DNA from: Chrysemys picta bellii
Lineage: Eukaryota
Length of the DNA: 64,000 nt
Reading direction: 5' to 3'
Assembly (NCBI RefSeq): GCF_011386835.1
Contig: NC_088797.1
Span: 29,450,001-29,514,000 of the forward strand
In this document: piece after piece, positions 38,001 through 61,470 of the stretch
Layout: every line of letters starts with the position of its first letter
Numbering within the stretch: the first letter of the stretch is position 1
Translations under genes and position numbers: made by a program
Notes under the pieces: model-generated
What the model was told of the DNA's origin: nothing
Databases searched by the model: none
Seen by the model: only the letters and a program-made list of their open reading frames with translations

Positions 38001-41000
38001 CGTCTGCTGTTGTCACCTTCCTGATGGACCAGAATGAGCCACGCACGCCTGCCGTGGCTGTGACCTCCGGCCCATTTGTCTATGTCTACAAGAACCTGCG
38101 GCCCTACTTCAAATTTACCTTGCCCCCCCTGGATGCCAACCCCCTGGAGCTGGACGTCTGGGAGCAGGCCAAAGAGGTGAGCAGGTGGGGGGTGGCATGG
38201 CCATCCCAGGGTACCAGTCCACACCCCTGTCCCCCACCTCAAACCAATGGGCCCACCCCTCCCTGGCACTCCACATCAGACCCAGCTCTGGGAGTGGAGT
38301 CTAGTGGTTAAAATGGAGGGGCTTGGAGCCAGGACTCCTGGGTTCTATTCCCAGCTTATAGTCATGTGCCTTCCCATCTCTCTCTATCTGCATCTCGTTC
38401 CAGGACATGATCGACCCCCTGACTCTGAAGGAAATGCTGGAGGGGATCCGGTGAGTGTCTCTTCCTTCCCCCCATGGACTGTCACATCACCATGCCCCCC
38501 CAAAAACTTCGTCCTGGTCCTTGGCTTAGCAAGTGCTGGGAGCTAATGCCAGAGGCATTTAACATTCGATCCCTGGGTGTGGACTCTGGGGAGATCCTTG
38601 AGGTTAGAGCCGGGCATGCTGAGAGCCAGGACTCCCGGGTTCTATCCCCAGCTCTGGGAGGGGAGTGGGATCTAGTGGTTACAGTAGAGGGGGTGGGAAA
38701 TCAGGACTCCAGTGTTCTGTTGTGGATGGCAGGGTCTGTGATGGTGAATGTATCGTATTGAGTTTCTGTCCAATGTCTTCCTCTCTGTTCAACATCTTCC
38801 TCTCCTGGTGTGTGTCAGGGACAAGGCGGAAATCCCCCTGTCGGTACGATCACTGAGGTAAGGCCATATGGTACCACTGAGGGCAAGGAGTGGCATGAGC
38901 ACCTCACCCTCCAGCGATTTCCTGGCTAGCACCAAAAACGTGGGCTGGGAGCTCTAGGAGCCTGATTTTTGTAGGGGATTGGAGCAGGGAGATTGAGGCT
39001 GGTGGCCAAAGGAGAATGTGTGAAGGGGTCAGGGCTGGATCCTGGCAACGGGGAAGGCAGATGGTGTAGGGAGCACAGGCTGGGGATTGGGGATCAGGGA
39101 GGGATCTCAGCAGTAGAGGAGGCGGGTAGCGTGCGGAGCACAAGACTGGGAGGTGACGGATCTCGGCAGTGGGGGAGGCGGGTGGTGTGTGGAGCACAAG
39201 CTGAGGGAGGGATCTCGGCAGTAGGGCAGGTGGGTGGTGTAGGGAGCACAAGCTGGGGCGGGGGGGATCGGGGAGGGATCTCAGCAGTGCGGGAGGCGGT
39301 TGTGTGACAAGGGTCGTGTGGGGAGCACAAGCCGGGAAGGTGGGGGTCGGGGAGGGATCTCGGCAGTGGGGGAGGCGGGTGGTGTGGGGAGAACAAGCCA
39401 GGGAGGTGGGGGTCGGGGAGGGATCTCGGCAGTGGGGGAGACGGGTGGTGTGGGGAGCACAAGCTGGGGAGGTGGGGGTCGGGGAGAAAGCTCGGCAGTG
39501 GGGAGGCGGGTGGTGTGAGGAGCATAGGACGGGAGCGGGGACGTTTTCCCAAAGCTTGGAAGGCTCTCAGCAGCAGAGCTCCTGTTCTAAGGGGTAGGGG
39601 GGGACACTGGGCCAGAGGAGGCTGTGTCACTATCCCACAATCCCCTTCTCTGTCTCCCCCACCCCTAGGTTCCTGGCCCAAGATGTACCAGAGATGGAGA
39701 ATTTTGTGAACCTACATAAGGGGCAACCGATCAAGCGCCAGGTGGGTCCCTGCCCTGCCCTGAGTCTGGGGAAAACTCCCCAGTGGACCCTCCCAGAGTA
39801 GGGGACTCGGTGGGGTGGGGGTTAGAGAAAAGGGGTATTCTAGCATTGCCAGTTCCCCACCGATGACTTGCGGGTCCCAGAAGGGCCATCCGGGTACCCT
39901 TACTTCCCAGCATGCCCCTGAGGAGACTGGCACTGCCCACCCTTGGTAGAGAGGGGGACTGGGGAAGGGGGAGGTTCATGCCCATCTCCCTGTCCAGACT
40001 GTCATCACCTGCATGAGCACGCTGAAGAAGAACATGGCGGATGAGGATGCGGTCAGCTGCCTGGTGATCGGGACGGAGAGCGCCGATGTCCTCATCCTGG
40101 ACCCTGAGGCCTTCACTATCCTGGCCAAGGTGAGTGGGGTGCCGGGTAAGGGGGTCTGTATATAAACAGTCCCCGCATCCCACCCCAGAGGTGGCTGCAT
40201 CTCAGCACCAGGCAAGGGACCCCTGATCATATGTAGCTCGTTCCCATGGGTGTGGGGCTGCCCCAGCTCTCCATTTGCTGTTGCAGATGACGTTGCCGAG
40301 CGTGCCAGCCTTCCTGGACGTGATGGGGCAGTTCGATGTGGAGTACCGGGTCACGGTGGCCTGCCGGGACGGGAGCATCTACATCCTGCGCAGGTGACAG
40401 CCATCTGTCTTGGAGCCTGGGGCTGGAATGGGGCAAAGGGGAAGGCAGAGGAGTGCTGAGGAACATAAGATAAGGAACCTGGTATGTCTCCTCCTCCCCC
40501 CGGATCAGACCTATGGTCCTTTCCAGCTTGGTATTCCCTTCCCTCTCCAATCAGACCCATGGGCTTATCCCAATACTCTGCCTCTCTGCTGCCCCACTGC
40601 CCAACAGCCACCCATGCCAGTTGCCCATAATGCACCTCTGTAGCGCTCTCCCATAGGGATGATTCCCTCCATGCAAGGGCTCAGCCAAGCCCAGGTGCCT
40701 GAAGGTTTGGTCTTGCTGTAACATCCCTACGAGTGAGGCCTGTCTGTGCCCATTCCCTGGGCACAGGGGGTGGGTGGGGGAGTGACGGGAGCCCACAAGG
40801 CAGGGGTGCAAGGAGGGAGCTGGGTGGGGCAGCAAGCACTGGGGCGGGCTGGCACTGACCTGTCTGCCCTCCCTTCCCACTCCAGGGAATCCAAGCGGCC
40901 CAAGTACTGCATCGAGCTGAGTGCCCAGCCCGTGGGGCTGGTGCGGGTACACAAGAATATCGTGGCCGGCTGCTCTGACGAAACCCTGCAGGGCTATACA

Positions 41001-44000
41001 CAGAAGGTGGGAGTGGGTGAGGGCACCTGCTACGGGGCACTAGGGGTGGGGCAGCTGGGCAGGTCTTGGAACCTATGTGCCCCCAGATCTGCTCCCTACA
41101 CCACCTGTTACCAAGGTGCCTCTCCCTGGGAGGACCAGCAGGAGATCTCCATACCTCCATTCTAGGTCTGGTCTGCTAAGGGGGCCAGTGTCACAGGGGT
41201 GGCACGCAAGGGATCCTTGTATAAATAGTCCCCCTCCCCCATCCCAGAGGCAGATAAACAGTCTTGCACCAGAAATGGTTACATCTAAGTGCCAGATCTC
41301 TTTCTCTTACAGGGGAAGAAGCTCTGGACAGTCTATCTGCCAGCCCCACTAATGACTATGAGCCTCCTAGACCAGAAATCACGCGGCTTCCAGGCCGTGA
41401 TGGTAGGTCTGGCCAACCAGGAGGTGCACATGTACCGGGACAAAAACCTTGTGGACATCATCCGCACGCAGGTAACTTTCCCACCAGGCAAAGCCAGTGC
41501 CAGGGTTAATGCAGGACTTCTGGGTTCTATCCCAGCTTTGGGCGGAGAGTAGGGTCTCATGGGCTAGAGCAGGAGGCTGGGAGCCAGGCCTCTTAAGTTC
41601 TATCGCTGGTTCTGAGAAGGGAATGGGGTCTAGTGGCTTAGAGTGAGGAGGCTAGGAGCCAGGATTGTGGATCTGATGGTTATGGGGGAGCCAGGACACT
41701 GGCCGAGCTGCCTGATATCACATTTCCACCCCCCCTCGCTCCCTCACAGGACGTGGTCACCAGCATTTGCTTTGGCCGCTATGGGCGTGAGGACAACACC
41801 CTGATCATGACGACTAAAGGTAGGCAAGGGGCATGCCGGGCGGGCACCATTCAGTTCCGTGCAATTGCTTCTGTGCAGTAGTGAATGCACCCTGCAGGGG
41901 ATGCTGCCGGCTGTGTGCAGGACACCCTGCCCAGCCCCATCTGTAAGGACACCCTGACCCTAGCTTAGAAATTCTACTCTCAGGCATCTGGGCATCAGCT
42001 GGGCTCCAGCTGGTGGGTCAGGAAGGAATTCAACTCCCGTGGGACAGTGCAGTGCAGCAAGGGGCATTAAGGAGACAGTACACCATGGGGAATAGGCCCA
42101 CAGGTCTGATCCAGGGAGAGGGGATTCAGGACCTTTGTGCCCATTTGTGGTGGTCCCACCCCACAGGCGGGGGGTTGATCATCAAGATCCTGAAGCGCAC
42201 GGCCGTGTTTGAGGAGAAGGACACGTCGCTGGGCCCTCCTGTGGCCCAGAGCATCCGACTCAGCGTGCCCAAGAAGACCAGGCTGTACGTGGACCAGACG
42301 CTGCGGGAGCGGGAGAATGCTGTGGGTGAGTAGGGCACGAATGGTGGGTTGAGGAGGGGGACTGCTTGTGGGCAGGTTGAGGATGGAGCAGCTGGGAGTG
42401 TAGGGGAATAAGGAGGGGGAATAGAGATTAGGGGTGGGAGGCAAGGTGGGGCATCTCCCATTCCATTTCCCATGCTCCCCCGGCCATGAGTCTCCTCCCA
42501 TGCGCCCAGCCGTAGAGTCACCAGTCCCACTCTGAGCATCAACCATGGGAAAGAGAGAAGCCACTGGATTGGGATTTACTTACCAGCTCAGCATGTCCAT
42601 GCAAATGCACTGACCAGCCACTGGGGGCGCTGTGCTGCAGGGAGCAGGATGGGGACTCAGTGCTGACCCTGGTGCCAGCGGAGCGACACTAAAGGTCCCT
42701 GTGCTGCAGATAAGGCATAAAGCCAAGATCCGTTGTGATTGGTAGAGATCCCCCTTATTGATTGGCTGCTGGCCCCAGGCTGACTGTCTGTCCTCGCTGT
42801 CCCTTCACCCCTCGCCAGCCATGCACCGCGTGTTCCAGATGGACCTCTACCGGCTGCGGCTCATGGCAGCCCGGGCCTATGTCAAGGCGCTGGAGTCCAG
42901 CCTGGTGCCCGTCACATCCACACTTCAGGAGCCCCTTAAGATGAATGCCGTGGTGAGTGGGTCATGGGGACACCAGACCCTTGGAATGAGGAGGGTATGG
43001 GGCATTTGGAGGGAGCCAGGAGACGGGGTGAGAAAATTCAGGATTGCGCAGGCGGAGGCTGTTCTTCCACAAGGATACTGACCCACGGGGGAGGGGTCAG
43101 CGAGGAGCCACGCGAACAATGGAAACCCTGGGCCTCAGGGAGCCCTAGTGGAAGAGTTCCTCTGAGAGAAGGTCCTGAGGGGGCTTGTCCCGGTCTCTCT
43201 GCGTAGTGGGGGGATTTGTGGGAGCAGGGGGTTCATGAAGGTCGCAGACAAAGTCTGAGCAAGAGCCAGGAGCCACCGTCAGCCACAGCCAGTGTTTAGC
43301 AGGGAGAGGGATTTGCCCTTCGGACAACAGGGGGCAGGGAACTCTCCATCGCTTGGGGGCTTTCAATCCAGAGGGGATGTGGCTCTAGCTCAGTGAGCAG
43401 ATCTGGGCTGAACTCCGGAATGGTGGGGGTGAGATTTGGGATTCAATCATCTCTTTAGATTTCCAGGGGTCCCTTCTTGTGGCTCCTGTGATGGAGAACC
43501 CCTCCCCCCCCCCAACCCCAGGCTGACTGGATTGGCTGTGGGATCAAGGACTCCTCTCTCCTTTGCACTGAACCTATGCTCAGGATCTACCCCACCCCCC
43601 CTTCCCCAGGTCCAGGGTATCGGCCCCACCTTCAAACTGACCCTCCACATTCAGAACACGTCAGCTGGGCGCCCCTCCATCAACCTGCTGGTGAGCTTCC
43701 TCTACGACCAGAGCCTCTATGCCATGAAGAGAGCCTTCTTCAAGGTACTCCCACCCCCCAACACCTCTGACCACCCCTACAGGCCCCTGCACTCTGCCTG
43801 ACTCAGCTTTGTCTCCCTACAGGCCCCCATGCTGGTCCCGGGACTGAACTACCCCATTGAAACCTTTGTGGAGTGTCTGAGCGACAAGGGGATCTCGGAC
43901 GTCATCAAGGTTTGTAGAGGGACACCCCACCGCAGAGAGATGCCTGACCCTTTAAAATGCTCCCACCTCCCTCCTGGTGTGGGTGGGTGGGGGGTTAGGA

Positions 44001-44203
44001 CCCAGAGGTGGCTGCATCTCAGTGCCAAGGGAGGGATCCATGTATAAGGAGGCCCTGCACCCCACCCCAGAGGTGGCTGCATCTCAGCACTGGGCGCTCT
44101 GTCTTCTCTCTTGCAGGTGTTTGTATTGCGGGAGGGCCAGAGCATGCCCTTGCTGACTGCCCATATCAACATGCCAGTGAGTGAGGGCCTGGTTGCTGCC
44201 TGA
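35059..44203 (+). CDS. BBS1: Bardet-Biedl syndrome 1 protein (BBSome subunit), 17 exons, 590 aa
   Basis: Exons 35059-35096, 35478-35554, 37495-37529, 37904-38176, 38404-38450, 38819-38857, 39669-39741, 39998-40129, 40287-40393, 40886-41006, 41313-41471, 41750-41819, 42167-42325, 42819-42952, 43610-43744, 43823-43909, 44117-44203; total 1773 nt, open. Motifs [52 protein letters not shown]. Confidence 0.97.
36555..36760. mobile_element. Penelope-type short repeat
   Basis: cccaggatattagcgagacaaggtggg...acttgtctctctcaccaacagaagttggtccaata; same family as the host at 10620-11210. Confidence 0.65.
39060..39530. repeat. G-rich degenerate minisatellite in BBS1 intron 6
   Basis: Repeats of gggatctcggcagtgggggaggcgggtggtgtggggagcacaagc (~60 bp). 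Confidence 0.75.
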
Positions 44204-44662
44204 ACCGCCTCTGGGGGGCGATAGAGACCAGAGCTGCAGTAGATCCCCTAGGAGCCCTCACTGGATCAGAGCCAGGACTGGGAGCCGAGGCCCCCTGCTG
44301 TGCAGTGACCCACCAGCTGCCCCCAGGGTGCACATTGCTGACTTGGGACCATGTAGAGTGGGGTGTCAGGGTTGCTGCTTCCCCAAACCGCCACCTGGGG
44401 TGCAGACCCAGCTGCGTTGTCTGGGATCAGGCCAGCTCCTTACATCAGAGGTGGTGGGGGGAGGTCTTATGCCCAGGCTGGAATTAAGAGCTGCTGGGGA
44501 AAGGGGTGTTTCTCCCCCATCATGGCCCTGGGGGCAGCACCTGGAAACCCCCTTAGCTGTGATCGTAGCATCTCACTAAAGCCAGCACCGTTGCTGTAAC
44601 GAGGGTGCTGGTGTGTGGAGTGCGTAGCATGGTGGGAGTCGGGTGGTACACTCAAGTTAACA

Positions 44663-44721
44663 ATTAAACAACCTCCCCCCATCAAAGGGGCCACACACAC
44701 AGCCCATAAAAGCAGTTTAAT
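44663..44721. terminator. Convergent poly(A) signals of BBS1 (+, ATTAAA 44663-44668) and CTSW-A (-, ATTAAA 44716-44721)
   Basis: Variant hexamers on opposite strands about 50 bp apart between the two stop codons. Confidence 0.5.
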
Positions 44722-44964
44722 GGCAGTTTCACAGGCCCCTTTCGCTGCTGCAGCAAAGGGAAGGAGCATTCGCGTGGAGGCAGTGTTGCTGGAAGGGCCG
44801 AGCCCAGCTCTGGGTACCTGTGGGGATGGAGCTAGAGCAGTCTGAGTATCGAATTCATTCCCCCATCACCCAGGGAAGGCCCGTGGCCCCAGTTAGTTCT
44901 GTCTTGGTGGTAGCAGGGGTCTTGGCAGGAAGTCAGCAGGCTCTCTGCAGCAGCAGCACCCCCT

Positions 44965-47900
44965 TCAGGGCGGGCAGGGGACTTTATGTTCCGGAGCCCC
45001 AACGCGGTGGACGGTGGCTGTTACAGGGAACGTGGTGATGCCGCAGGCGTTACTGCCGCGATGGAGACGGTAATAGCCCTGCCGAGGGGACACGTGGTTA
45101 GGGACAGATGGTACTGGACAGTCTTTCCTCACCTAGGGCTGCTCTACACCGGGAACTGACATTGGCATAGCTCTGTCTCTCGGGGGTGTAACAATCCACA
45201 CACTCCGAGAGACATAGCCGTGCGGCCCTGCCCCCGCAGTAGCCTGCACTAGGTGGATGGAAGAATTCTCCCGCCTCTCACTCCACCTTTGCGTCAAACT
45301 GGAACGGGGTCTGAACCTGCACAGGGAGTGGATAATACAGGGGTAGCCAACCTGTGGCTCCGAGCCACATGTGGCTCTTCAGAAGTTAATATGTGGCTCC
45401 TTATATAGGCACCGACTCCGGGTCTGGAGCTACAGGCGCCAACTTTCCAATGTGCCGGGGGTGCTCACTGCTCAACCCCTGGCTCTGCCACAGGCCCTGC
45501 CCCCACTCCACCCCTTCCCTGAGCCTGTTGTGCCCTCACTCCTCCCCCCTCACACCCTAGAGCCTCCTGCATACCACAAAACAGCTGATGGGGAGGAAGG
45601 GGAAAGGCGCTGATTGGTGGGGCTGCCAGTAGGCGGGAGGTGCTGGGAAGCGGGGTGGAGGGGAGAAGCTGATGGGGGGCTGCTGATGTATTACTGTAGT
45701 TCTTTGGCAATGTACATTGATAAATTCTGGCTCCTTCTCAGGCTTAGGTTGGCCACTCCTGGTATAATAAAAGCCCACACCTCACCCCAGTGAGGGCTGT
45801 GTCTTAGCATTACTCATAGACTCATAGACTCTAAGGTCAGAAGGGACCATTATGATTATCTAGTCTGACCTCCCGCATGATGCGGGCCACAAAAGCTGAC
45901 CCACCCACTCCTGGAAGAATTCTCTCCCTTGACTCAGCTGTTGAAGTCCCCAAATCATGATTTAAAGACTTCAAATTGCTGAGAATCCTTCAGCAAGCGA
46001 CCCCTGTGTAAACAGTCCCTGCACCCCACCCAGAGTCCGTCTCTGTATGATCCCACAGCACAGCCTCCTTCAGACAAAACCAGCCCACACCCTCACAGCC
46101 AGCACTGCCCTGGGGGCAGCCCCATACACTCCCCACTCACCTCCTCTCCCCAGTCTTCCCCCCTGGAGTTCTGGATGACCCAGTACTGCATTTTCTTCTC
46201 TGAAATGAATTGGTGAAGAGAAAGGCACAGTGGTCTTAGTGTTTCTGACAGCTGAGCCCCCTGCCAAACTCCAGTTCATTTAACCCCATCTCACCCCAAT
46301 CCAAACCCTTGTACTGCCCATCCCCACTCACCATGCCCGTAACCAACCAGCAGGCCAACATGATCCACCCGGTCTGGACTACAGCTCTTCACTGAGGGCT
46401 GGGAGATGCCCAGTTTATAATGCTGCAGTGGCACAAAAATGAGCCAAAAGTGAATGGGCGGGGGGTGTCTTAGTGGGTGGATCACCATGGGTTGGGCTGA
46501 GTAGCCAGAGGGCTTCTCCCGCATTGCTAATTGGGAGGCACCTACCTTCATGACAGCTGAGTTCAGGGTAACTGTGATTGGGCCCTTGCTTGCGACGTGT
46601 GCAGCTATTTCTACAAGAGGAAACCCAAAAGTACGGGGTGAGGAGGAGGACCCAGGAACAAACACCCCTGACCCAGGCATGGCCCTACCAGGCTGCTGCT
46701 GTCCCCACACACTGGCTACATTGGCCCTTGCCCCTCTCTGGGCCCTCTACACCCCTCACATTCCCCCTCTGCTGCTCAGAGCTCCCCCAGGGGGAAGCAT
46801 GAAACTAACCAGCCCCTTGTTGGTTTCACACACATCACCCCATGCACCCTCCTGCCCATGCACAGCTGCCTGGAAACTGACCAGGTCTTGATCAGTTCTG
46901 CCCCTGCTTCCCCCCTTCCCTCCCAGCCCTCTTTGTCACCCCCCTAATCCTGTTCTACTGCCCTCACTTGCTTCCTTTGCCCTCACCACTCCCCCTCCTT
47001 GCCCCAGTGCTGGCCCCACCCCAACCCCTCTCCCCACAGGCCTCACCCTCCTCATCTCCAGGTAGTGTCTGGAAGCCCTGGATATAGGCAGCCAGCACAT
47101 TGAGGCTGTCGCATGTTTCCTGTGTCCCTGTGTAGGGGTAGGCATCCTCGCTGGTCAGACCACCTGGGAGGGAGTGTATGTGAAAGGTCTGGGATGGGCC
47201 CAGAGCGCCTCATTCCCTGCTCCATCCTTCCCCTGTTCTGGACTCAAGGGTCACAGTAAACCCCCTCCCCCCAAATTCAGCCTGTCACAGAGTATGGCCA
47301 GAGCAGAGTCTAGGAGTGAAGAGGAATGTCCCTTCTGTATACAGTATTGGGAAAATTGCTCCCAGTCTGGGTCAGGGTCCATGCACCACCTGGCGTAATG
47401 GGGGCTCCAATCTCAGTCAGGGTCTGCGCAGCGTCCAGTGATGGGGGCTGCAGATTGGGCTGGGGGCCCCAATCTCAGTCAAGGGGTCTGTGCAGCACCT
47501 GTGGTGACGGGGGCCCCAATCTGGGTTGGGGTCTGTGCAGTGCCTGGCACAATGGGGGGCCCCAGTATGAGTTGGAGTGAGTCTCCATGCACTGAAGTAT
47601 CCTTACAGTAAACAGTTGTGAGGGGTGAATAGGGGAGAGTCCTGGGAGCTGTGGGGGGCTTTATTGTCTGTAGGGCAAAGGAGCCCACGTCCCTCCAGTG
47701 CCTATATACCCTTGTGTAGCACCGTAGTGAAGGCGTCCCACACGTAGCCCCCTTTGCACCCCACTCCGCACAAGCTGCAGTCCAACACCTCTGCAAGGGA
47801 AGTAGTGGGTGAGCATCAAGCCAGCTCCCCCTCACCCCAGTCAGATCCTGGGATCCTGCTCCTGCTGGGTGGCACACACTGACCAGGAAAGACCCCAGTG

Positions 47901-50900
47901 GGCACTGGCTCATCTGACAGGTGGGACGTCTCACAGTGGCTCCCACTGGGGTGATGAACCCACCCCTGGATGGAGAGACTCAGCACCTGCCACCCCCTGC
48001 TTTAACATCTGGTGGGGGAGAGTTCCACAGGCAGGGCTCAGCTGATAATAGATGCGGGGGGAGGGGAGGTCGGTGAAGGGATCCTAGCCTACCAGGAGGC
48101 AAGTCTGTGGTGGGGCTGTCCCCCCACCCCAGTGAATGCTAATGGGGTGCAAATACATGAACCCCCATGCATGGAGACATGGTCCCTATATACCCCACAC
48201 ACCCAGCCAGCTCCCAGGCCCGTCAAGGGTTACAAGCTCCCAGTTTGGGACAGGAAGTGAAGGGGGTACTTTACACACACACTAACTCTCATTCTCAGGG
48301 GGAGGAGCTTAGAACAGCCCCAGGCGCCCCCTCCTCTGTGCCCCATTCATCCCGGCCTCTGGGGCTGCTGCACACATCAGGGCAGCGCTGGGGTGCCCCT
48401 CCCTGTGCCAGTCGAGGGGGCGAGGCTCCCCACAGCCCCTACCTTGCACCGAGAGGTTCCGGGGCTGGTGGAAGTGGATGTTCCAGAGGGACTCGATGTT
48501 GGCAACGGCAGCGAAGGCCCAGCAGGAGCGGCACTTATCGCCCTGCGGAGAGAGGGGTGAGGCCCAGCGTGGTGCTAGGGGGCACTGTGCTGCAGGGCAG
48601 GAGGGGGCGCTCTCCCCAGCCTCAGCGCTGACCCCAATGCCCCAGCTGAGGGAGGGGGCGCCGGTTGGGGTTAGCAGTGGGGAGAGGGGTGGGAGTGGAA
48701 TGATTTTGTCAGTACTGAGCCCCGCATGGCTCCCCCTGTCCTGCCCCATCTAACTGCCCGTCTGGGGGGTTCCCAACCCCGCCCCTCCCACAACTACCTG
48801 GTCTTTTACGGCCGTCACAGCCCCCGCCTTCCTCCAATCGCAGGACAGGGGCAGCTTCTTCCTCGGGAACCGGGGGGCCTGGCGCATGGTGGGGGGCGGG
48901 GGGCTCCGGAACATCCCCCGGAACTCCTCATCTGGGGAGATGGAGGGTGATGGTGCTGAGGGGGTGCTGGAAGGGAAGGGAGGGGGTGCAGAGCAGTGGG
49001 CGAAGGGAGGACTGCAGAGCGGTCATGTGGGAAATGAGGGGTGCATGGGAGAGGTGCAGAGCAGTGGGCGAAGGAAGGGGTACACGGGAGGGGTGCAGAG
49101 CGGTGGGGGTGGGGAAGGGGGGTGCAGAGAGGTTGGGGCAGGGGAAGTGAAGGGTCCACAGTAGGGGGTGCAGAGCGGTGGAGGCAGAGAAAGGAGGGGT
49201 ACACGGGAGGGGGTGCAGAGCGGTGGGGGCGGGGAAGGGAGGGGTGCATGGGAGGGGTGTAGAGCAGTGGGTGAAGGGGAAGGGAGTGGGTGCAGAGCAG
49301 TGGGGGAAGTGGGGTGCACAGGAGGGGGTGCAGAGCGGTGGGTGAAGGGGAAGAGGGGGTGCAGAGCAGTGGGGGAAGGGAGGGGTGCAGAGAGGTGGGC
49401 GAAGGGGAAAGGAGGGGGGCAGAGCTGCAGGGGAGAGGGATGCGGCGTCGGGGGTCGCTCCCCACCTGTCCAGTCGCTGAAGCGGGTCACCCCGTACTGC
49501 CCCGTGCCCAGCTCCGTCTCCTGCAGCCGCTGCGCCGCGAGCAGGCTCCGCGTGAAGATCCCGAAGCGTCTGCGCTGCTCTGGAGGAGGATGTGGGGGTC
49601 ACGGGCACTGGGGGGCACGACACCCCCCGCCAGTGGCATCGGACACCCTGCCCCCCCCCGACCTCCCCAGGACAAATCGGGCGGAAATTTCCAACCCTCC
49701 CCGCGCCTATTTCCGCTGCCAGCTACAGAGCCGAGCCACAGGGGGCTGGGTGTGAAACCAGCGTGAGGGAAAGAGCGAGACAGCAGCGGAGCCCCCGCCC
49801 CTCCCGCGCATCCCCCCGGCCCTGAGGGGAGGGGAACATGCAGGGCCCAGGGAAGGCGGCTTGCACCAGCCGCGGGCAGGCCGGGCTCAGAGGTGTCTGG
49901 TCACAGAGGCGGAGAGAAGGAGATCGGTCTGGTCTGTCCACCCCCGCCTCAGTCCCATCCGTCCCCCTGCTGCCCCATGTTCTCCACATGCTAACAGCCC
50001 CCAGGAAGAGCCGCCTGCCCCCCCCCCCCCCGTCCGTCCGTCACCTGCGGGGCTCCTGTAGGTTCTGTTGAACTGAATCATAAAATCCTTGAACATTCGA
50101 GTCACTTCAGTCTGAAATGGACAAACCGGCAGGATGGTGGGGAGAGAAGGCGCGTCCCAGCAGCCAGTGCCCCTGCCTCAATTCCTACTCCCAGCCCCCA
50201 GCTACCCACAGCTCTGCTAGTGCCCCCCCATCCGCACCCACAGCCCCGTTAGCCCAACCCTGGTCCCCCCACCCACAGCCCTGCTAGTGCCCCCCCATCC
50301 GCACCCACAGCCCCCTGTTAGCACAACCCTGGTCTCCCCCCACCCACAGCCCTGCTAGTGCCCCCCCCATCCGCACCCACAGCACCCTGTTAGCACAACC
50401 CTAGGCTCTGCACACCCTTCCCAGCTCTGTTCCTGGCCCTCAATCCTCAGCCTTCGGCTATCCCTGCTTTGGGGTGCAGGGTGGAGTCTGCTGCTGTCAG
50501 GGATGGATGGGGGAACATGCCTGTCTAGGTGGGTGGGCATTGGTGTCTGTGTGCAGTTTGGGTGTCAGAGGGGGGAGCACGTGGAGCATGGGGGAGTGTG
50601 CAAGGAGCGTGAGGCACAGACTGGCCCTACCGGACCTTCCCCTCTCGCGGGTGCTGGCTCCAATCCCCGTCCCTGGATTCTCCACACATGCACCAAATGC
50701 TGGGTCTCAGCACAGTAGCCAGTGAGTCTTGGCACAGACACTCGGTGTCTTCTCTGTCCTTCTCTGGCTTTCAGGTCCACTCCGCCCCAAAACTGCTCCC
50801 TCCAGGTGCATCCTCCATCCCTTACCTTGCTGAGTTCAGGGGGCAGGACAGAGCCAGCTGGGAGGGCCCAGACCCACAGCAGCAGGAGGCAGGGACTCAG

Positions 50901-50915
50901 GACTCCAGGCCCCAT
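44965..50915 (-). CDS. CTSW: Cathepsin W-like papain-family cysteine protease, copy A, 11 exons, 343 aa
   Basis: Exons (minus) 50915-50826, 50111-50045, 49579-49466, 48931-48798, 48542-48443, 47790-47710, 47163-47047, 46610-46546, 46422-46332, 46199-46141, 45078-44965; total 1032 nt, open. Signal peptide, I29 prodomain (GVTRFSDWT), [32 protein letters not shown]-terminus [13 protein letters not shown]...VPCPP as in cathepsin W. Confidence 0.88.
45338..45761. mobile_element. hAT MITE specific to CTSW copy A (last intron)
   Basis: TIRs CAGGGGTAGCCAACC / GGTTGGCCACTCCTG; TSD ggataata / gtataata; empty site at 56690-56697 in copy B. Confidence 0.9.
45812..46003 (-). mobile_element. CR1 3'-end fragment specific to copy A
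   Basis: Octamer tail actcatagactcatagactc and CR1 3'UTR; absent from the paralogous position about 56725-56750. Confidence 0.75.
48950..49440. repeat. Degenerate G-rich minisatellite in CTSW intron 3 (paralog at about 59790-60160)
   Basis: Repeats of gggtgcagagc(a/g)gtggggg. Confidence 0.75.
50200..50420. repeat. Minisatellite expansion in CTSW-A intron 1
   Basis: About 3 copies of cacagccctgctagtgccccccatccgcacccacagccc...; only a single unit in copy B. Confidence 0.7.
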
Positions 50916-51484
50916 GGCAGTAGCAGCTCAGTGCCTGCCTAGGCATCCTGTGGGGGGGTTATATGGGGAGGGGCAGGCAGAAGAGTGACGGAAACCACAG
51001 AGCAGAGGAGCTGCAGGTGTGAGATCCGGGGCCAGGGGGCAGATATGTGTATGTGGGGAGGGAATCCAAGGTGTGGGGGTTGGCTTCAGATGTCCAAGCA
51101 GCCTCAAACCTGCTCCTGTGCCCTCAGGGTCCACACCACGGGGGCGGGGGGACGGAGGATGGACAGATTTGGGGACAATGGGGCATTGTTCCATCCATTC
51201 CCATCGCTCATCTGCTCTACTACATTTAGCCCGAGGCACCAGCCCCTGGTGACTACCCTTCCCCCTCCCCCCCGTGGGAGGTAACAGTCCCCCAGAATCC
51301 AGGGACCTCGGGAGCAAAGACGCTTATGGAAACCACAGCACAGTGAACCTCTGTCCTATATAAACAGTCCCCGCATCCCACCCCAGAGATGGCTGCATCT
51401 CAGCACCAGGCGAAGGACTCCTGCTCATATACAGCTCGTTCCCATGGATGTGGGGCTGCCCCTGGTCTCCATTTGCTGTCGCAG

Positions 51485-54400
51485 ATGACGTTGTCGAGCG
51501 TGCCAGCCTTCCTGGACGTGATGGGGCAGTTCGATGTGGAGTACCGGGTCAACGTGGCCTGCCGGGACGGGAGCATCTACATCCTGCGCAGGTGACAGCC
51601 AGCCGTCGGGGTGCCTGGGGCTGGAATGGGGCAAAGGGGAAGGCAGGGGAGTGCTGAGGAACATAAGATAAGGAACCTGGTATGTCTCCTCCTCCCCCCG
51701 GATCAGACCTATGGTCCTTTCCCACTGCCCAACAGCCACCCATGCCAGTTGCCCATAATGCACCTCTCTTTGTAGCACTCTCCCATATGGGTGATTCCCT
51801 CCATGCAAAGGTTCAGCCCAGGCCCCGGTGCCTGAAGGTTTGGTCTTGCTGTAACATCCCTACGAGTGAGGCCTGTCTGTGCCCATTTCCTGGACACGGG
51901 GGGGAGGGGGAGGTGACAGGAGCCCACAAGGCAGGGGTGCAAGAAGGGGAGCTGGGTGGGGCAGCAAGCACTGGGGGGGGGAGGGCTGGCACTGACCTAT
52001 CTGCCCTCCCTTCCCACTCCAGGGAGTCCAAGCGGCCCAAGTACTGCATCGAGCTGAGTGCCCAGCCCGTGGGGCTGGTGCGGGTACACAAGAATATTAT
52101 GGCCGGCTGCTCTGACGAAACCCTGCAGGGCTATACACAGACGGTGGGAGTGGGTGAGGGCACCTGCTACGGGGCACTAGGGGTGGGGCAGCTGGGCAGG
52201 TCTTGGAACCTGTGTGCCCCCAGATCTGCTCCCTACATCACCTGTTACCAAGATGCCTCTCCCTGGGGGGACCAGCTGGAGATCTCCATAGCTCCATTCT
52301 AGGTCTGGTCTGCTAAGGGGGCCAGTGTCACAGGGCTGCCACGCAAGGGATCCTTGTATAAATAGTCCCCCTCCCCCATCCCAGAGGCAGATAAACAGCC
52401 TTGCAGCTCACCCCAGAGATGGCTACATCTGAGTGCTAGATCTCTTTCTCTTACAGGGGAAGAAGCTGTGGACAGTCTATCTGCCAGCCCCACTAATGAC
52501 CATGTCATAACTATAAAGGGAAGGGTAACAGCTGTCCTGTGTACAGTACTATAAAATCCCTCCTGGCCAGAGACTCCAAAATCCTTTTCCCTGTAAAGGG
52601 TTAAGAAGCTCAGGTAACCTGGCTGGCATCTGACCCAAAGGCCCAATAAGGGGACAAGATACTTTCAAATCTTGCGGGGGGGGGGGGGGAAGGCTTTTGT
52701 TTGTGCTCTTTGTTTGGGAGTTGTTTGCTCTTGGGACTGAGAGGGACCAGACATCAATCCAGGTTCTCCACATCTTTCTAAACAAGTCTCTCATATTTCA
52801 AATTTGTAAGTAAACAGCCAGGCAAGGCATGTTAGTTTTTACTTTGTTTTCTCAACTTGTAAATGTACCTTTTACTAGAGTGTTTATCTTTGTTTGCTAT
52901 ACTTTGAACCTGAGGCTAGAGGGAGATCCTCTGAGCTCTTTAAGTTTGATTACCCTGTAAAGTTATTTTCCATACTGATTTTACAGAGATGATTTTTACC
53001 TTTTTTCTTTAATTAAAAGTCTTCTTTTTAAGAACCTGATTGATTTTTTTCCTTGTTTTTAGATCCAAGGGGGTTGGATCTGTATTCACCAGGAGTTGGT
53101 GGAAGGAAGGAGGGGGGGATGGTTAATTTCTCCTTGTTTTAAGATCCAAGGGGGTTGGAACTGTATTCACCAGGAGTTGGTGGAAGGAAAGAGGGGGGAT
53201 GGTTCATTTCTCCCTGCTTTAAGATCCAAGGGGTTTGGATCTGTGTTCACCAGGGAATTAGTGAAGAGTTTCTCAAGGCTTCCCAGGGAAGGGAATCCAC
53301 TTGGGAATGGTGGCAGCGGACCAGATCTAAGCTGGTAGTTAAGCTTAGAAGTTTTCATGCAGGTCCCCACATTTGTACCCTAAAGTTCAGAGTGGGGAAG
53401 CAGCCTTGACAGACCATGAGCCTCCTAGACCAGAAATCACGCGGCTTTCAGGCCGTGATGGTAGGTCTGGCCAACCAGGAGGTGCACATGTACCAGGGCA
53501 AAAACCTTGTGGACATCATCCACACCCAGATAACTTCCCCAGAAAGCAAAGCCAGTGCCAGGGTTAATGCAGGACTCCTGGGTTCTATCCCAGCTTTGGG
53601 AGAAGAGTAAGGTCTCATGGGCTAGAGCAGGAGGCTGGGAGCCAGGCCTCTTGAGTCTTATCCCTGGTTCTGAGAAGGGAATGGGGTCTAGTGGGTTAGA
53701 GTGAGGAGGCTAGGAGCCAGGATTGTGGGTATGATGGTTATGGGGGAGCCAGGACACTGGCTGAGCTGCCTGATACCCCATTACCCCCCCTCGCTCCGCC
53801 ACAGGACGTGGTCACCAGCATTAGCTTTGGCCGCTATGGGCGTGAAGACAACACCCTGATCATGACGACTAAAGGTAGGCAAGGGGCATGCCGGGTGGGC
53901 ACCATTCAGTTCCGTGCAATTGCTTCTGTGCAGTAGTGAATGCACCCTGCAGGGGATGCTACCGGCTGTGTGCAGGACACCCTGCCCAGCCCCATCTGTA
54001 AGGACACCCTGACCCTAGCTTAGAAATTCTACCCTCAGACATCTGGGCATAAGCTGGGCTCCAGCTGGTGGGTCAGGAATGAATTCAACTCCCGTGGGAC
54101 AGTGCAGTGCAGCAAGGGGCATTAAGGAGACAGTACACCATGGGGGATGGGCCCACAGGTCTGATCCAGGGAGAGGGGATTCAGGACCTTTGTGCCCATT
54201 TGTGGTGGTCCCTCCCCGTAGGCGTGGGGTTGATCATCAAAATCCTGACAAGCACAGCTGTGTTTGAGGAAAAGGACACGTCGCTGGGCCCTCCTGTGGC
54301 CCAGAGCATCCGACTCAGCGTGCCCGAGAAGACCAGGCTGTACATGGATCAGACGCTGCGGGAGCGCGAGAATGCCGTGGGTGAATAGGGCAGGAATGGT

Positions 54401-55007
54401 GGGTTGAGGAGGGGGACTGCTTGTAGGCAGGTTGGGGATGGAGCAGCTGGGAGTGTAGGGGAATGAGGAGGGGGAGTGGAGATTGGGCGTGGGAGGTGAG
54501 GTGGGGCATCTCCCACCATTTCCCAGGCCCCCCCGGCCATGAGTCTCCTCCCATGTGCCCAGCCATAGAGCCACCAGTCCCACTCTGAGCATCAACCATG
54601 GGAAAGTGAGAAGCCACTGGATTGGGATTTACTTACCAACTCAAAGTATGTCAGTGCAAATGCACTGGCCAGCCACTGGGGGCGCTGTGCTGCAGGGAGC
54701 AGGGTGGGGACTCAGTGCTGACCCTGGTGCCAGCGGAGGGACACTAAAGGGCCCTGTGCTGCAAATAAGGCATAAAGCCAAGATCCGTTGTGATTGGTAG
54801 AGATCCCCCTTGTTGATTGGCTGCTGGCCCCAGGCTGACTGTCTGTCCTCGCTGTCCCTTCACCCCTCGCCAGCCATGCACCACGTGTTCCAGATGGACC
54901 TGTACCGGCTGCGGCTCATGGCAGCCCGGGCCTATGTCAAGGCGCTGGAGTCCAGCCTGGTGCCTGTCACATCCACACTGCAGGAGTCCCTTAAGATGAA
55001 TGCCGTG
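51485..55007 (+). pseudogene. BBS1: BBS1 partial pseudogene 1 (exons 9-14)
   Basis: Exon copies 51485-51591, 52023-52143, 52457-53529 (split by LTR; donor GT to AT at 53530), 53805-53874, 54222-54380, 54874-55007; exons 1-8 absent, exons 15-17 deleted; 3'UTR homology resumes about 55506. Confidence 0.93.
52503..53411. mobile_element. Solo LTR (909 bp) inserted in pseudo-exon 11
   Basis: TGTCA...TGACA termini; perfect 5-bp TSD GACCA (52498-52502, 53412-53416); internal 3x repeat aagatccaaggggttggatctgtattcaccagg. Confidence 0.93.
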
Positions 55008-56210
55008 GTGAGTGGGTCATGGGGACACCAGACCCTTGGAATGAGGAGGGTATGGGGCATTTGGAGGGAGCCAGGAGACGGGGTGAGGAAATTCAGGATT
55101 GCGCAGGCGGAGGCTGGGAGCCAGGACTCCTGGGTTCTCCACAGCTCTAGGAGGGGAGGGGGGTCTGGTGGGCGTGGGGCTGGGCAGTTTTCCCTACTGT
55201 GGGTTGTCCCTGTGCAGGACTATTTTTAAAATCCCCCTCCCATCCTGCCCTGCAATACCCATTCCCACACCCGCTCCAGCCTTCTTTCTTGAATTTTTAT
55301 CCTGCTCCTGCCATTATGGCAGCAGGACCCTCAGGATCCCCGTCCCGCTGCAGGGTTCTAGGTTGAAGCACATGGTCTAACTACTAGACTAAGCTGCCTG
55401 CTTTGGCAGGGTCACTGGTGGGAGAGAAGCATCTGATTTCTCTGTGCTCAGGGTGGAGGTGCTGGGAGCGGAGCAGGCAGCGCCCGCGAGGCCATTACAG
55501 GATGTTGCAGAGCTACAGTAGATCCCATAGGAGCCCTCACTGGATCAGAGCCAGGACTGAGAGCCAAGGCCCCCTGCTGTGCAGTGAACCACCAGCTGCC
55601 CCCAGGGTGCATGCTACTGACTTGGGACCATGTAGAGGGGGGTGTCAGGGCTGCCGTCCCCAGCCTGGGGTGCAGACCCAGCTGCGTTGTCTGGGATCAG
55701 GCCAGCTCCTTACGTCAGAGGGGGTGTGGGGAGGTCCAGAGCTGCTGGGGAAAGGGGTGTTTCTCCCCCAACATGGCCCTGGGAGCAGCACCTGGAAACC
55801 CCCTTAGCTGTCGTAGCATTTTAATAAAGCCAGCACTGTTGCTGTATCGAGGGTGCTGGTGTCTGGAGTGCGCAGTGCGGGGGGAGATAAGGGGGTACAC
55901 TCAGGTTAACAATCAAACAACCTCCCCCCATCAAAACACACACAGCACATAAAAGCAGTTTAATGGCAGCTTCACAGGCCCCTTTCGCTGCTGCAGCAAA
56001 GGGAAGGAGCATTCGCATGGAGGCAGTGTTGCTGGAAGAGCTGAGCCCAGCTCTGGGTACCTGTGGGGATGGAGCTAGAGCAGTCTGAGTATCGAATTCA
56101 TTCCCCCATCACCCAGGGAAGGCCCGTGGCCCCAGTTGGTTCTGTCTTGGTGGTAGCAGGGGTCTTGGCAGGCAGTCAGCAGGCTCTCGGCAGCAGCAGC
56201 ACCTCCTCCT

Positions 56211-59200
56211 TCAGGAGGGGCAGGGGACGTTATGTCCCGGAGCCTCAACACTGTTGACGGTGGCTGTTACAGGGAACGTGGTGATGCCACAGGCGTTACT
56301 GCCACGATGGAGACGGTAATAGCCCTGCCGAGGGGACACGTGGTTAAGGACAGATGCTACTGGACACTCTTTCCTCACCCAGGGCTGCTCTACACCAGCA
56401 ACTGACACTGACATAGCTCTGTCTCTCGGGGGTTAAAAATCCACACACCCCGAGAGATGTAGCAGTGCCGACCTCCCCCTGCAGTAGCCTGCGCTAGGTG
56501 GATGGAAGAATTCTTCTGTCAGCCCAGTTCCTGCCTCTCAGGGAAGTGGATGAACTTCAGTGACAGGAGACCCCCTGCCACTGGTGGAGTTGGCGGTGCA
56601 GCTGTGTTGTGGTAGCGGTTTAAGTGTAGACAAACCCTCACTCCGCCTTTGCGTCAAACTGGAATGGGGTCTGAACCTGGACAGGGTGTGGATAATAAAA
56701 GCCCACACCTCACCCCAGTGGGGGCCGTGTCTTTGTGTTAGGCAGGGGATCCTGTATAAACAGTCTCTGCACCCCACCCAGAGGCCATCTCTGTATGATC
56801 ACACAGCACAGCCTCCTTCAGACAAAACCAGCCCACACCCCCACAGCCAGCACTGCCCTGGGGGCAGCCCCATACACTCCCCACTCACCTCCTCTCCCCA
56901 GCCTTTCCCCCAGGAGTTCTTGATGATCCAGTACTGCCCTTCCTTCACTGCAATGAATTGGGGAAGAGAAAGGCACAGTGGTCTTAGTGCTTCTGACAGC
57001 TGAGCCCCCTGCCAAACCCCCAGTTCGTTTAACCCCATCTCACCCCAATCCAAACCCTTGTACTGCCCATCCCCACTCACCATCTTCCCCGTAGCCAACC
57101 AGCAGGCCAACATGATCCACGTGGTCCGGACTACAGTTCTTAACCGCGGGATGGGAGATGCCATTTTGATAATTCTGAAGAGGCACAAAAATGAGCTGAA
57201 AGTGAGTGGGGGGGGGGAAGAAGGGGGGGCCTTAGTGGGTGGGTCACCATGGGATGGGCTGAGTAGACAGAAGGCTTCTCCTGCGTTGCTAATTGGGAGG
57301 CACCTACCTTCATGACAGCTGAGTTCAGGGTAACTGTGATTGGGCCTGCGCTTGCGACGTGTGCAGCTATTTCTACAAGAGGAAACCCAAATGTACGGGG
57401 TGAGGAGCAGGACCCAGGAACAAACCCCTGACCCAGGCATGGCCCCACCAGACTGCTGTTGTCCCCACACACTGGCTACATTGGCCCTTGCCTCTCCCTG
57501 TGTCCTCTGGGCCTCCTGCACCCCTCACATTCCCCCTCTGCTGCTCAGAGCTCCTCCAGGGGGAAGCATGAAACTAACCAGACCCTTGTTGGTTTGACAC
57601 ATATCACCCCATGCACCCTCCTGCCCATGCACAACTGCCTGGAAACTGACCAGGTCTTGATCAGTTCTGCTGGCCCTGCTTCCCCCCTCTCCCCTCCCCA
57701 GCCCTCTTTGTCACCCCCTAATCCTGTTCTACTGCCCCTCACTTGCTCCCTTTGCCCCCAGAACTCAACCATAGATGGCCCACTCCCCCCTGGCCCCAGT
57801 GCTGGCCCCACCCCAACCCCTTTCCCCCCCAGGCCTCACCCACTTCATCTCCAGGAAGGGTCTGGAAGCCATGGATATAGGCAGCCGGCACATTGAGGTT
57901 GTGGCATGTCTCCTTTCTCCCTGTGTAGGGGTAGGCATCCTCGCTGGTCAGCCCACCTGGGAGGGAGTGTATGTGAAAGGTCTGGGATGGCCCAGAGTGC
58001 CTTATTCCCTGCTCCATCCTTCCCCTGTTCTGGACTCAAGGGTCACAGTAAACCCCTTCCCCCCAAATTCAGCCTGTCACAAAGAGTGTGGCCAGAGCAG
58101 GGCCTAGGACTGAGGAGGGGTCTCCCTTCTGTATACAGTATTGGGAAGATTGCTCCCAATATGGGTCAGGGTCCATGCACCACCTGGCGTGATGGGGGCC
58201 CTAACCTCAGTCAGGGTCTGCGCAGCATCCGGTGATGGGGGCCGCAGACTAGGCTGGGGGCCCCAATCTCAGTCAAGGGGTCTGTGCAGCACCTGTGGTG
58301 ACGGGGCCCCAATCTGGGTTGGCGTCTCTACAGTGCCTGGCATGATGGGAGGCACCAGTCTGAGTCCGAGTGATTCTCCATGCACTAAAGTATCCTCATA
58401 GTAAACAGCTGTGAGGGGTGAACAGGGGACAGTCCTGGGGGCTTTGGGGGGTTTATTGTCTGCAGGGCAAAGGACCCCATGTCCCTCCAGTGCCTACGTA
58501 CGCCTGTGTAGCACCGTAGTGAAGGCGTCCCATGCGTAGCCCCCTTTGCACCCTGCTCCACACCAGCTGCAGTCCAACACCTCTGCAAGGGAAGTAGTGG
58601 GTGAGCACCAAGCCAGCTCCCCCTCACCCCAGTCAGACCCTGGGATCCTGCTCCTGCTGGGTGGCACACACTGACCAGGAAAGACCCCAGTGGGCACAGG
58701 CTCATCCGACAGGCAGGACGTCCCACAGTGGCTCCCACCGGGGTGATCAACCCACCCCTGCATGGAGAGACTCAGCACCTGCCACCCCCTGCTTAAACAT
58801 CTGGTGGGGGGGGGTTCCAGGGGCAGGGCTCAGCTGATAGTAGACTGGGGGTGGGGGGAGGTGATGGGATCGTAGCCTACTAGGAGGCAAGTCTGTGGTG
58901 GGGCTGTCCCCCCACCCCAGTGAATGCTAATGGGGTGCAAATACATGAACCCCCATGCATGGAGACATGGTCCTTGTATACCCCACCCACCCAGCCTGCT
59001 CCCAGACCCATCAAGGGTTACAAGCTCCCAGTTGGGACAGGAAGTGAAGTGGGTACTTTACTCTCTCTCTCTTTCTCTCTCTCACACACACACTCTCTCT
59101 CTTCCCCCCTCTCACGGCTGGGAAGGGCACGGAGTTTACAACAGTCCCAAGCGCCCCCTTCTCTGTGCCCCCCATTCATCCCAGCCTTTGGGGCTGCTGC

Positions 59201-61470
59201 TCACAGCAGGGCAGCGCTGGGGTGCCCCACCCTGTTCCAGTCGAGGGGGCGGGGCTCCTCCCAGCCCCTACCTTGCACCGAGAGGTTCCGGGGCTGGTGG
59301 AAGTGGATGTTCCAGAGGGACTCGATATTGGCAACGGCAGCGAAGGCCCAGCAGGAGCCGCACTTATCGCCCTGCGGAGAGAGGGGTGAGGCCCAGCGTG
59401 GTGCTAGGGGGCGCTGTGCTGTAGGGCAGGAGGGGGCGCTCTCCCCAGCCTCAGCGTTGACCCCAATGCCCCAGCTGAGGGAGGGGGCGCCAGCTGTGGT
59501 TAGCAGTGGGGAGCGGGGTGGGGCTGGAATGATTTTGTCAGTACTGAGCCCCTCATGGCTCCCCCTGTCCTGCCCCATCTAACTGCCCATCTGGGGGGTT
59601 ACCAACCCCGCCCCTCCCACAACTACCTGGTTCTTCACGGCGGTCACGGCACCCGCCTTCCTCCAATCGCAGGAAGGGGGCAGCTTCTTCCTCGGGAGCT
59701 GGGGGGCCTGGTGCATGGTGTGGGGCGGGGGGCTCCGGAACATCCCCCGGAACTCCTCATCTGGGGAGATGGAGGGTGATGGTGCTGAGGGGGTGCTGGA
59801 AGGGGGAGTGAGGGGTGTAGAGCAGTGGGGGGCAGGCAAAAGGGGTGAAGAGCAGTGGAGACAGGGGAAGGGAGATGGTGCACGGAAGGGGTGCAGAGCG
59901 GTGGGGGCGGGGAAGGGAGTGCAGAGCAGTGGGGGCAGAGAAGGTGCATGGAAGGGGTGCAGAGCGGTTGGGGTCAGGGGAAGGGGGGTGAAGAGCGGTG
60001 GGGGTGGGGAAGGGAGAAGGTGCATGGGAAAGATGCAGAGCGGTGGAGCCGGGGGATGTGGGGTGCAGAGCGGTCAGGGCAGGAAATGGGGTGCATGGCA
60101 GGGGTGCAGAGCGGTGGGCAAAGGGGAAGGGAGGGGGGCAGAGGTGCAGGGGAGAGGGATGCGGCATTGGGGGTCGCTCCCCACCTGTCCAGTCGCTGAA
60201 GCGGGTCACCCCGTACTGCCCCGTGCCCAGCTCCATCTCCTGCAGCCGCCGCGCAGCGAGCAGGCTCCGCGTGAAGATCCCGAAGCGTCTGCGCTGCTCT
60301 GGAGGAGAGTGGGGGGGTCACAGGCACTGGGGGGCACGACACCCCCAGCCAGTGGCATCAGACACCCTGACCCCCCCAGCACTAATCGGGGCGGGGATTT
60401 TCCACCCTCCCCGCGCCTCTTTCCGCTGCCAGCTACAGAGCCGAACCACAGGGGACTGGGTGTGAAACCAGCGTGACAGAAAGAGCGAGACAGCAGCGGA
60501 GCCCCCGCCCCTCCCGCGCATCCCCCCGGCCCTGGGGGGAGGGGAACATGCAGGGCCTAGAAGGCGGCTCGTGGGCAGGCCAGGCCAGGCCAGGCTCAGA
60601 GGTGGCTGGTCACAGAGGCGTGGAGAAGGGGATCAGGGGTGGACAGACCAGCCCGCCTCAGCCCCATCCGTCCCCCTGCTTACCCCCAAAGTTCTCCCCT
60701 TGGTAACAGCCCCCAGGAAGAGCCGCCTGCCCCCCCCCACACCAACAGCCCCCCACTCCCGTCCTGCCCCTCACCTGCGGGGCTCCTGTAGGTTCTGTTG
60801 AACTGAATCATAAAATCCTTGAACATTAGTGTCACTTCAGTCTGAAATGGACAAACCGGCAGGATTGTGGGGAGCGAAGGGGCGTCCCAGCAACCAGTGC
60901 CCCTGCCTCAATTCCCACTCCCAGCCCCCAGCTACCCACAGCTCTGCTAATGCCTCCCAATCCCCACCCAAAGTCCCCTGCTACCCCTACCCCAGCTCCC
61001 GGCTATCCCTGCTTTGGGGTGGAGTCCACTGCTGTCTGGGGTGGATGGGGGGACATGCCCGTCTGGATGGGTGGGCGTTGGTGTCTGTGCAGTTTGGGTG
61101 TGTGTGTGTGGGAGCACATGGAGCATGGGGGAGTGTGCAAGGAGCATGAGGCACAGACTGGCCTACAGTGGTGGGGAATGGCTACAGGACCTTTTCCTCT
61201 CTCGGGTGCTGGCTCCAATCCCCATCCCTGGATTCTCCACACATGCACCAAATGCTGGGTCTCAGCACAGTAGCCAGTGAGTCTTGGCACAGACACTCGG
61301 TGTCTTCTCTGTCCTTCTCTAGCTTTCAGGCCCACTCCGCCCCAAAACTGCTCCCTCCAGGTGCATCCTCCATCCCTTACCTTGCTGAGTTCAGGGGGCA
61401 GAACAGAGCCAGCTGGGAGGGCCCAGGCCCACAGCAGCAGGAGACAGGGACTCAGGACTCCAGGCCCCAT
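56211..61470 (-). CDS. CTSW: Cathepsin W-like cysteine protease, copy B, 11 exons, 344 aa
   Basis: Exons (minus) 61470-61381, 60841-60775, 60298-60185, 59760-59627, 59371-59272, 58582-58502, 57956-57840, 57372-57308, 57174-57081, 56947-56889, 56324-56211; total 1035 nt, open. Canonical [29 protein letters not shown]. Confidence 0.9.

Follow-up and report, generated by a model that had tools for sequence, protein, structure and literature searches.

Cathepsin W-like genes and the active site of copy A

A stretch of 64,000 nucleotides from Chrysemys picta bellii, the western painted turtle (assembly GCF_011386835.1, contig NC_088797.1, positions 29,450,001 to 29,514,000 of the forward strand; hereafter the window, in whose numbering all coordinates are given), carries two cathepsin W-like (CTSW-like) genes, copies A and B, in tandem on the minus strand. 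Copy A extends from a start codon at 50915 to a stop codon at 44965 and consists of 11 exons encoding 343 amino acids, while copy B spans 61470 to 56211 and encodes 344 amino acids in 11 exons. Copy A is set apart by an Arg in place of the Trp of the papain-family Asn-Ser-Trp-Gly motif (Trp177 in papain numbering, which is used below for active-site residues). The joined models of A and B match RefSeq proteins XP_065407156.1 (P0137) and XP_065407160.1 (P0136), respectively, letter for letter, and both proteins bear the name "cathepsin W-like". A preliminary description of the window, made from the letters alone, had called the frame of copy A intact, which the 343-residue model and the identical RefSeq protein bear out. 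The exon structure is the same in both copies, all introns run from GT to AG, and all 20 splice sites are intact.

Pfam searches of copy A, run exon by exon, returned Peptidase_C1 (PF00112) and the I29 propeptide (PF08246), both of which are also carried by P0137, the protein used for all later searches, fold prediction and PDB alignment. Exon 1 (50826..50915) holds the start codon and the signal peptide and ends in a GT donor. The I29 prodomain lies in exon 3 (49466..49579), where Pfam and the translation place an ERFNAQ-type motif (E53, R57, F61, S64, A68, Q72) with five of six residues kept and Asn replaced by Ser in both A and B. By translation, exon 4 (48798..48931) contains the end of the prodomain and the start of the mature enzyme, including the Gln19 codon (CAG, 48800-48798), a residue that is invariant among 194 aligned sequences. 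Exon 5 (48443..48542) encodes GDKCRSCW, with Arg23 at 48530-48528 (CGC) and Cys25 at 48524-48522 (TGC). His159 (CAT, 46362-46360) is found in exon 9 (46332..46422), which has one codon fewer than its counterpart in B, and exon 10 (46141..46199) supplies Gln174, Asn175, Ser176 and Arg177. Exon 11 (44965..45078) closes the translation with the stop codon. Judged by its sequence, copy A is a peptidase C1A of the cathepsin F/W subgroup, with the signal peptide, I29 prodomain and mature domain of a normal papain-type proenzyme.

As the preliminary description had it, copy A retains the oxyanion Gln and the catalytic Cys, His and Asn, and all four codons were located in the model (Q135, C142, H277 and N297 of the protein, in columns that are invariant or nearly so). 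The disulfide cysteines are likewise in place, C139, C173, C180, C270 and C318 being invariant and C142 and C213 nearly so in an alignment of 58 sequences. Cys25 and His159, the loss of either of which would mark a pseudoprotease, are both present in copy A; what it lacks is the Trp, replaced by Arg299. The reported codons (AAC TCC AGG at 46170-46162) proved exact to the base. Copy B, in contrast, reads AAC TCC TGG at Asn175 to Trp177 and GGC at residue 23 (59359-59357), giving CGSCW and KNSWGKGWGEE.

How unusual these residues are was judged from about 190 cathepsin W and F proteins, collected by a representative search on exon 5 followed by word searches and cluster look-ups; columns were counted over an alignment of 194 sequences. 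At residue 177, Trp occurs in 166 sequences, in line with its description as near-invariant, and Arg in 14, every one of them from painted turtle, so that Arg177 appears in no other species among these relatives. One further genuine exception is a W-like protein of Alligator sinensis (P0013), which has His. A word search with the stop-free frame around exon 10 of B returned two Trypanosoma proteins only and no orthologs.

The other two supposed alterations fared differently. Gln174, listed as a changed Lys, is found in 50 of the 194 sequences and is ordinary for the family. Residue 23 is Gly in 86, Arg in 63 and something else in 45, and among turtles alone it takes eight states (R, H, G, N, Y, S, L and Q). 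Arg23 is in fact the commonest state in non-mammalian cathepsin W, being carried by sea turtles, softshells, Emydura, Mauremys, Platysternon, a third painted-turtle copy, lizards, snakes, frogs, salamanders and one caecilian. In placental and marsupial cathepsin W the residue is not Gly, and Gly23 is replaced in human CTSW also (PMC11171618). Because Arg23 is so widespread, CRSCW is no alteration of copy A, and the change from CGSCW to CRSCW had been given the wrong direction. Residue 23 is Gly in B of the new assembly and Ser in the B-like proteins of an older assembly and of Emys, and Gly23 of B is probably the derived state. On these alignments, then, Trp177 to Arg is the only unusual active-site feature of copy A. 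Annotators of non-mammalian cathepsin W should accordingly not read residue 23 or Gln174 as marks of a changed active site.

The fold of P0137 was predicted with the 58-sequence alignment, at a mean predicted local distance difference test (pLDDT) score of 86.6, rising to 95-96 around residue 299 and falling below 50 at residues 1-24. The model superposes on procathepsins K and L with template modelling (TM) scores of up to 0.88. A comparison with cathepsin F, proposed in the preliminary description, gave a TM score of 0.95 against the mature enzyme (PDB 1m6d), with a root-mean-square deviation of 1.2 Å, 44% identity and the catalytic residues aligned. In the sequence alignment to 1m6d, Arg299 takes the place of the KNSWG Trp and Arg140 that of the CGSCW Gly, and copy A has one extra residue between Gln19 and Cys22.

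In papain, Trp177 helps to hold the substrate, forms the wall of the S1' site and shields the His159-Asn175 pair from solvent (PMC8244254). It has also been linked to how the Cys25/His159 pair acquires its nucleophilic character (PMC8244254, citing Storer and Menard 1994 and Gul et al. 2008). The oxyanion hole, on the other hand, is made by Gln19 and the Cys25 NH without Trp177 (PMC8244254). Of the two roles first proposed for this Trp, lining of S1' therefore stands and lining of the oxyanion hole does not.

The Arg codon, its transcripts and its neighbors

The window belongs to a new chromosome-level assembly of the western painted turtle built from HiFi reads (preprint 10.1101/2025.04.01.646645), whereas the older assembly derives from another individual. 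It is highly improbable that an assembly error or a rare allele gave rise to the Arg codon, as the RefSeq protein from the HiFi assembly equals the model of A, painted-turtle proteins of the older assembly likewise read QNSR, and a DNA contig of run X10, which bears another organism label, spans 46124-46309 with only four differences, all intronic, leaving exon 10 and its AGG identical. The sole point in favor of such an error is one X4 contig with an extra C at 46157, in the run of G beside the codon.

Copy A is also expressed, an absence of transcripts having been named beforehand as a result that would count against it. Spliced RNA was found in three runs (X15, X17 and X4), whose contigs contain the joints 46422/46546, 46610/47047, 47163/47710 and 47790/48443, matching the modelled exon borders of introns 5 to 8. 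In X15 and X17, the exons are covered and most introns are not. An X15 RNA contig on 48443-48545 matches exon 5 of A without a difference, so the exon that encodes CRSCW is transcribed. Intron 8 (46423-46545) is 123 bases long, in frame and stop-free, and its retention would add 41 residues; the spliced form is the one found in the RNA contigs.

A few contigs depart from the model. Spliced contigs of X17 and X4 have T (minus strand) at 46199, giving Val rather than Glu at the codon split between exons 9 and 10, and one X17 contig ends exon 9 (46332-46336) in GAGGATG, like a painted-turtle form with Ser25 (GYGED; see below). Together with the extra base at 46157, these variants fit further A-like copies or alleles. 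Beyond the 3' end of A (44650-44960), long RNA contigs of 1525 and 2524 bases extend outward, and could represent either a long 3' untranslated region of A or the transcript of an abutting neighbor.

Among painted-turtle proteins of the older annotation, several with 90-95% identity to A pair QNSR with a change of Cys25 to Ser (CRSSW and CHSSW forms, of the XP_042705701 and XP_042705699 types; P0026, P0029 and P0144). Cys25 has been lost from W-like proteins elsewhere as well, to Ser in Pelusios (P0049) and Leptobrachium (P0082) and to Gly in Elgaria (P0067). More broadly, reptile and amphibian cathepsin W-like proteins show repeated loss of catalytic-site residues, as also in Chrysemys P0149 and P0150 of the older annotation. 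Some older painted-turtle isoforms look like exon chimeras of different tandem copies, and one (P0141, 688 amino acids) is a two-copy fusion. From one painted-turtle assembly to the other, the A-like and the B-like proteins diverge by 3-5%. Genome-wide heterozygosity is 0.48% (preprint 10.1101/2025.04.01.646645), which makes alleles differing at 5% of residues unlikely, and some variant contigs in the read comparison fit A-like paralogs.

Self-blastn resolved a tandem array over 39407..64000 with units of approximately 11.2-11.6 kilobases, one containing A, one containing B and a third beginning at 62655. Segment 40159-43061 matches 51357-55116 at 93-95%, and 39407-40774 matches 62655-63974 at 89%; on the latter match, the third unit starts at 62655 and continues past the window's end. 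The western painted turtle array thus has at least three units. A third, slowly evolving painted-turtle gene with CRSCW and KNSW (P0171, XP_065407161) lies outside the window, probably just beyond it.

Repeats are common in and around these genes. Intron 10 of A (45310-46100) contains high-copy interspersed repeats, where in each of the four runs the summed contig depth reaches values between thousands and hundreds of thousands, and about 320 bases of this intron are missing from copy B. G-rich minisatellites with periods of 29-142 bases occupy intron 3 of both A (49053-49440) and B (59811-60151), while a 72-base repeat of 2.9 copies in intron 1 (50204-50408) is confined to A. Between the two genes sits a further repeat, of 81 bases and 2.6 copies (53046-53254). 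Upstream of the array, on the plus strand, an open frame at 25153-25875 matches Peptidase_M49 strongly (E = 6e-31) and belongs to a dipeptidyl peptidase 3-like gene as one of its exons.

Divergence of the copies and competing explanations

In database searches, the best matches of copy A all come from turtles and are cathepsin W or W-like proteins, in keeping with cathepsin W orthology. In the trees, A pairs with an A-like protein of the older assembly (support 100/99) and B with a protein of Emys orbicularis (95/90), and both fall within one emydid clade of turtle CTSW together with the slowly evolving third copy (Chrysemys, Emys and Malaclemys). This placement in a single clade indicates that the duplications are emydid-specific. 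Judging from the trees, the split between A and B appears to be older than that between Emys and Chrysemys.

Between the A and B proteins there are 46 substitutions, plus an indel of one codon in exon 9 (GYG-H in A, GYGED in B), in agreement with the earlier count of about 46 differences and one indel over some 343 residues. In exon 10 (46199-46141, including the split first codon) there are nine nucleotide differences, all nine non-synonymous and together producing eight amino acid changes in 20 codons; the recount again agreed. When the 47 differing sites were polarized with 12 turtle outgroups, 15 proved derived in A, 24 in B and 8 ambiguous, and relative-rate tests were flat with each outgroup (P from 0.39 to 1.0). 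The change of Trp177 to Arg took place on the A lineage, given that Trp is present in all 12 outgroups. Two other outgroup-invariant residues were also lost from A, a Trp at 175 and a Pro at 219, both to Leu, in addition to the Trp at 299 (papain 177). Within exon 10, three changes fell on A (Val to Glu, Lys to Gln and Trp to Arg), four on B, and at one site both copies changed. The non-synonymous excess noted earlier in exon 10 is therefore real in its counts, while in its direction it is shared, with 3-4 of the 8 changes on A and 4-5 on B, and nine of nine is not significant by itself (P = 0.21 under neutrality). When the rest of the gene serves as reference, the same ratio gives P = 0.02, uncorrected for 11 exons.

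Selection was gauged from omega, the ratio of non-synonymous to synonymous divergence, computed pairwise between A and B from Nei-Gojobori counts. Overall it is 0.51 and significantly below 1 (P = 0.005); in exons 9-10 it reaches 1.04, compared with 0.30 in the rest of the mature domain. These two exons have diverged by 16%, against 8.1% for the introns (P = 0.002) and 3.8% for intron 9 (P = 0.0007). Because synonymous divergence is equally high there, positive selection is not proven. Gene conversion was considered as a cause of the uneven divergence and is only marginally indicated, the longest identical run being 96 bases against a 95% shuffle limit of 93 (P = 0.046). Gaps between the copies tell a simpler story: 85 events in 4037 aligned intron bases, versus a single in-frame event in 1032 coding bases (P ~1e-8). 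At the intron rate, about 15 frameshifting gaps would be expected where none occurs (P ~2e-7), and there are no stop codons, while 84 random substitutions keep the frame open in only 4.5% of trials. Clearly, the reading frames of both A and B have been maintained by selection.

On balance, copy A is probably an expressed, functional, emydid-specific paralog of cathepsin W with a weakened or retuned catalytic site. A cationic Arg177 would be expected to weaken the thiolate-imidazolium pair or to shift its pH dependence, and it would also change S1' and hence the P1' residues that the enzyme accepts. Copy A might then be a low-activity or retuned enzyme. Considering that relatives with Ser25 exist, constraint on the catalytic efficiency of the A lineage may have relaxed, with the protein as a whole still kept, and the Ser25 A-like sequences fit a putative drift towards a low-activity or non-catalytic protein. 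The nucleophile itself remains in A and only its shielding Trp is replaced, so sequence alone would not justify calling it a pseudoprotease. Of the reduced activity or neofunctionalization first suggested for copy A, the support that holds consists of a real, derived Trp177 to Arg change at a near-invariant site, of an intact, selectively maintained and spliced gene, and of the Ser25 relatives; neofunctionalization by positive selection finds no support in an omega of about 1, not above it, in exons 9-10.

Several observations weigh against a weakened site peculiar to copy A. B carries no fewer derived changes than A, and a pairwise omega blends the two lineages, so that relaxation is not assignable to A alone. 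In the part of the contig differences displayed, beyond which lie 83 further rows, the AGG codon was not individually confirmed in RNA contigs. The painted-turtle Ser25 forms could be either separate paralogs or divergent alleles of A. Lastly, a papain-fold protease, the agglutinin of Marasmius oreades (MOA), is active with Gln in place of this Trp (PMC8244254), and a loss of activity in A is accordingly not certain.

It is also conceivable, albeit doubtful, that diversifying selection acts on the substrate cleft in the emydid cathepsin W array, a family of immune-cell proteases, for instance in response to pathogen inhibitors or in favor of new substrates, in which case Arg177, Arg23 and an Arg at papain position 156 would give copy A a new specificity and not a defect. 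The eight states of residue 23, immediately beside the nucleophile, agree with such a view, as do the divergence of exons 9-10 beyond that of the introns, the changes of exon 10 in both copies and the 3-5% by which the A-like and the B-like proteins each depart from one assembly to the other. The omega of exons 9-10, however, does not exceed 1 and synonymous divergence is equally high in them, while relatives that exchanged Cys25 for Ser suggest that catalysis was lost, not gained. A bolder version of events is rather unlikely: the array would be diversifying fast, with positions 23, 156, 174 and 177 turning over as in an arms race, and one sublineage would have fixed Arg177, from which some members went on to Ser25. 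If true, a single species would hold a natural gradation that leads from an enzyme to a binding protein without catalysis.

Decay can be argued from the same residues. The loss of Trp177 and of two further outgroup-invariant residues, the relatives without Cys25 and the omega near 1 in exons 9-10 would all be expected of a functionless duplicate whose frame has stayed open by chance. Such a duplicate is nonetheless an improbable explanation of copy A, which has every splice site intact, no frameshift, no stop codon, an overall omega significantly below 1 and spliced RNA. The frame, stop and omega tests span all of the time since duplication, and a very recent loss of function would be compatible with them. 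Both this reading, as a dead pseudogene, and a sequencing error at the Arg codon were considered and set aside.

Comparison with known cathepsins

Cathepsin W is a protease of cytotoxic lymphocytes and among the least understood of the human cysteine cathepsins, its substrates and its need for activity being debated. The painted-turtle copies, with Trp177, with Arg177 and with Ser25 in their relatives, offer a ready series for dissecting the roles of Trp177 and residue 23 in catalysis and specificity, and could show whether cathepsin W has a role independent of proteolysis. No publication on duplicated cathepsin W genes in turtles came up in a literature search.

Copy A has much in common with cathepsin W (lymphopain) of mammals and other tetrapods: a gene of 11 exons, a signal peptide, an I29 prodomain carrying an ERFNAQ-type motif, and Gln19, Cys25, His159 and Asn175. 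It differs in the extra residue between Gln19 and Cys22 and, relative to the placental-mammal protein, in being without the long insertion before Asn175. With mammalian CTSW it shares a residue 23 other than Gly; unlike human CTSW, which keeps Trp177, it has Arg, and it is one of several tandem copies where a single human gene is described (review PMC11171618). Human cathepsin F, the closest solved structure, has the 44% identity given above in the mature domain, and its catalytic residues all align with those of A, although it reads MCGSCW and KNSWG where A reads DKCRSCW and QNSRG.

Catalytically dead or weakened papain-family paralogs occur in lineage-specific tandem arrays, with examples in rodent testin, the placental cathepsin cluster, Plasmodium SERA (Ser for Cys) and sponge silicatein. 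Like them, copy A may be counted among recent tandem cathepsin duplicates in which active-site residues were replaced and the frame was kept, and the Ser25 painted-turtle forms are of the same type. Copy A itself is different in that the nucleophile is kept and only the shielding Trp is replaced.

A more distant parallel is the protease domain of MOA, which likewise has a papain fold without Trp at position 177 and is active (PMC8244254). MOA, only distantly akin to copy A, makes up for this by a swapped Trp where papain has Gln19, whereas copy A keeps Gln19 and shows no such swap. Set beside these systems, copy A is a lineage-specific active-site variant of a known and already annotated gene family.

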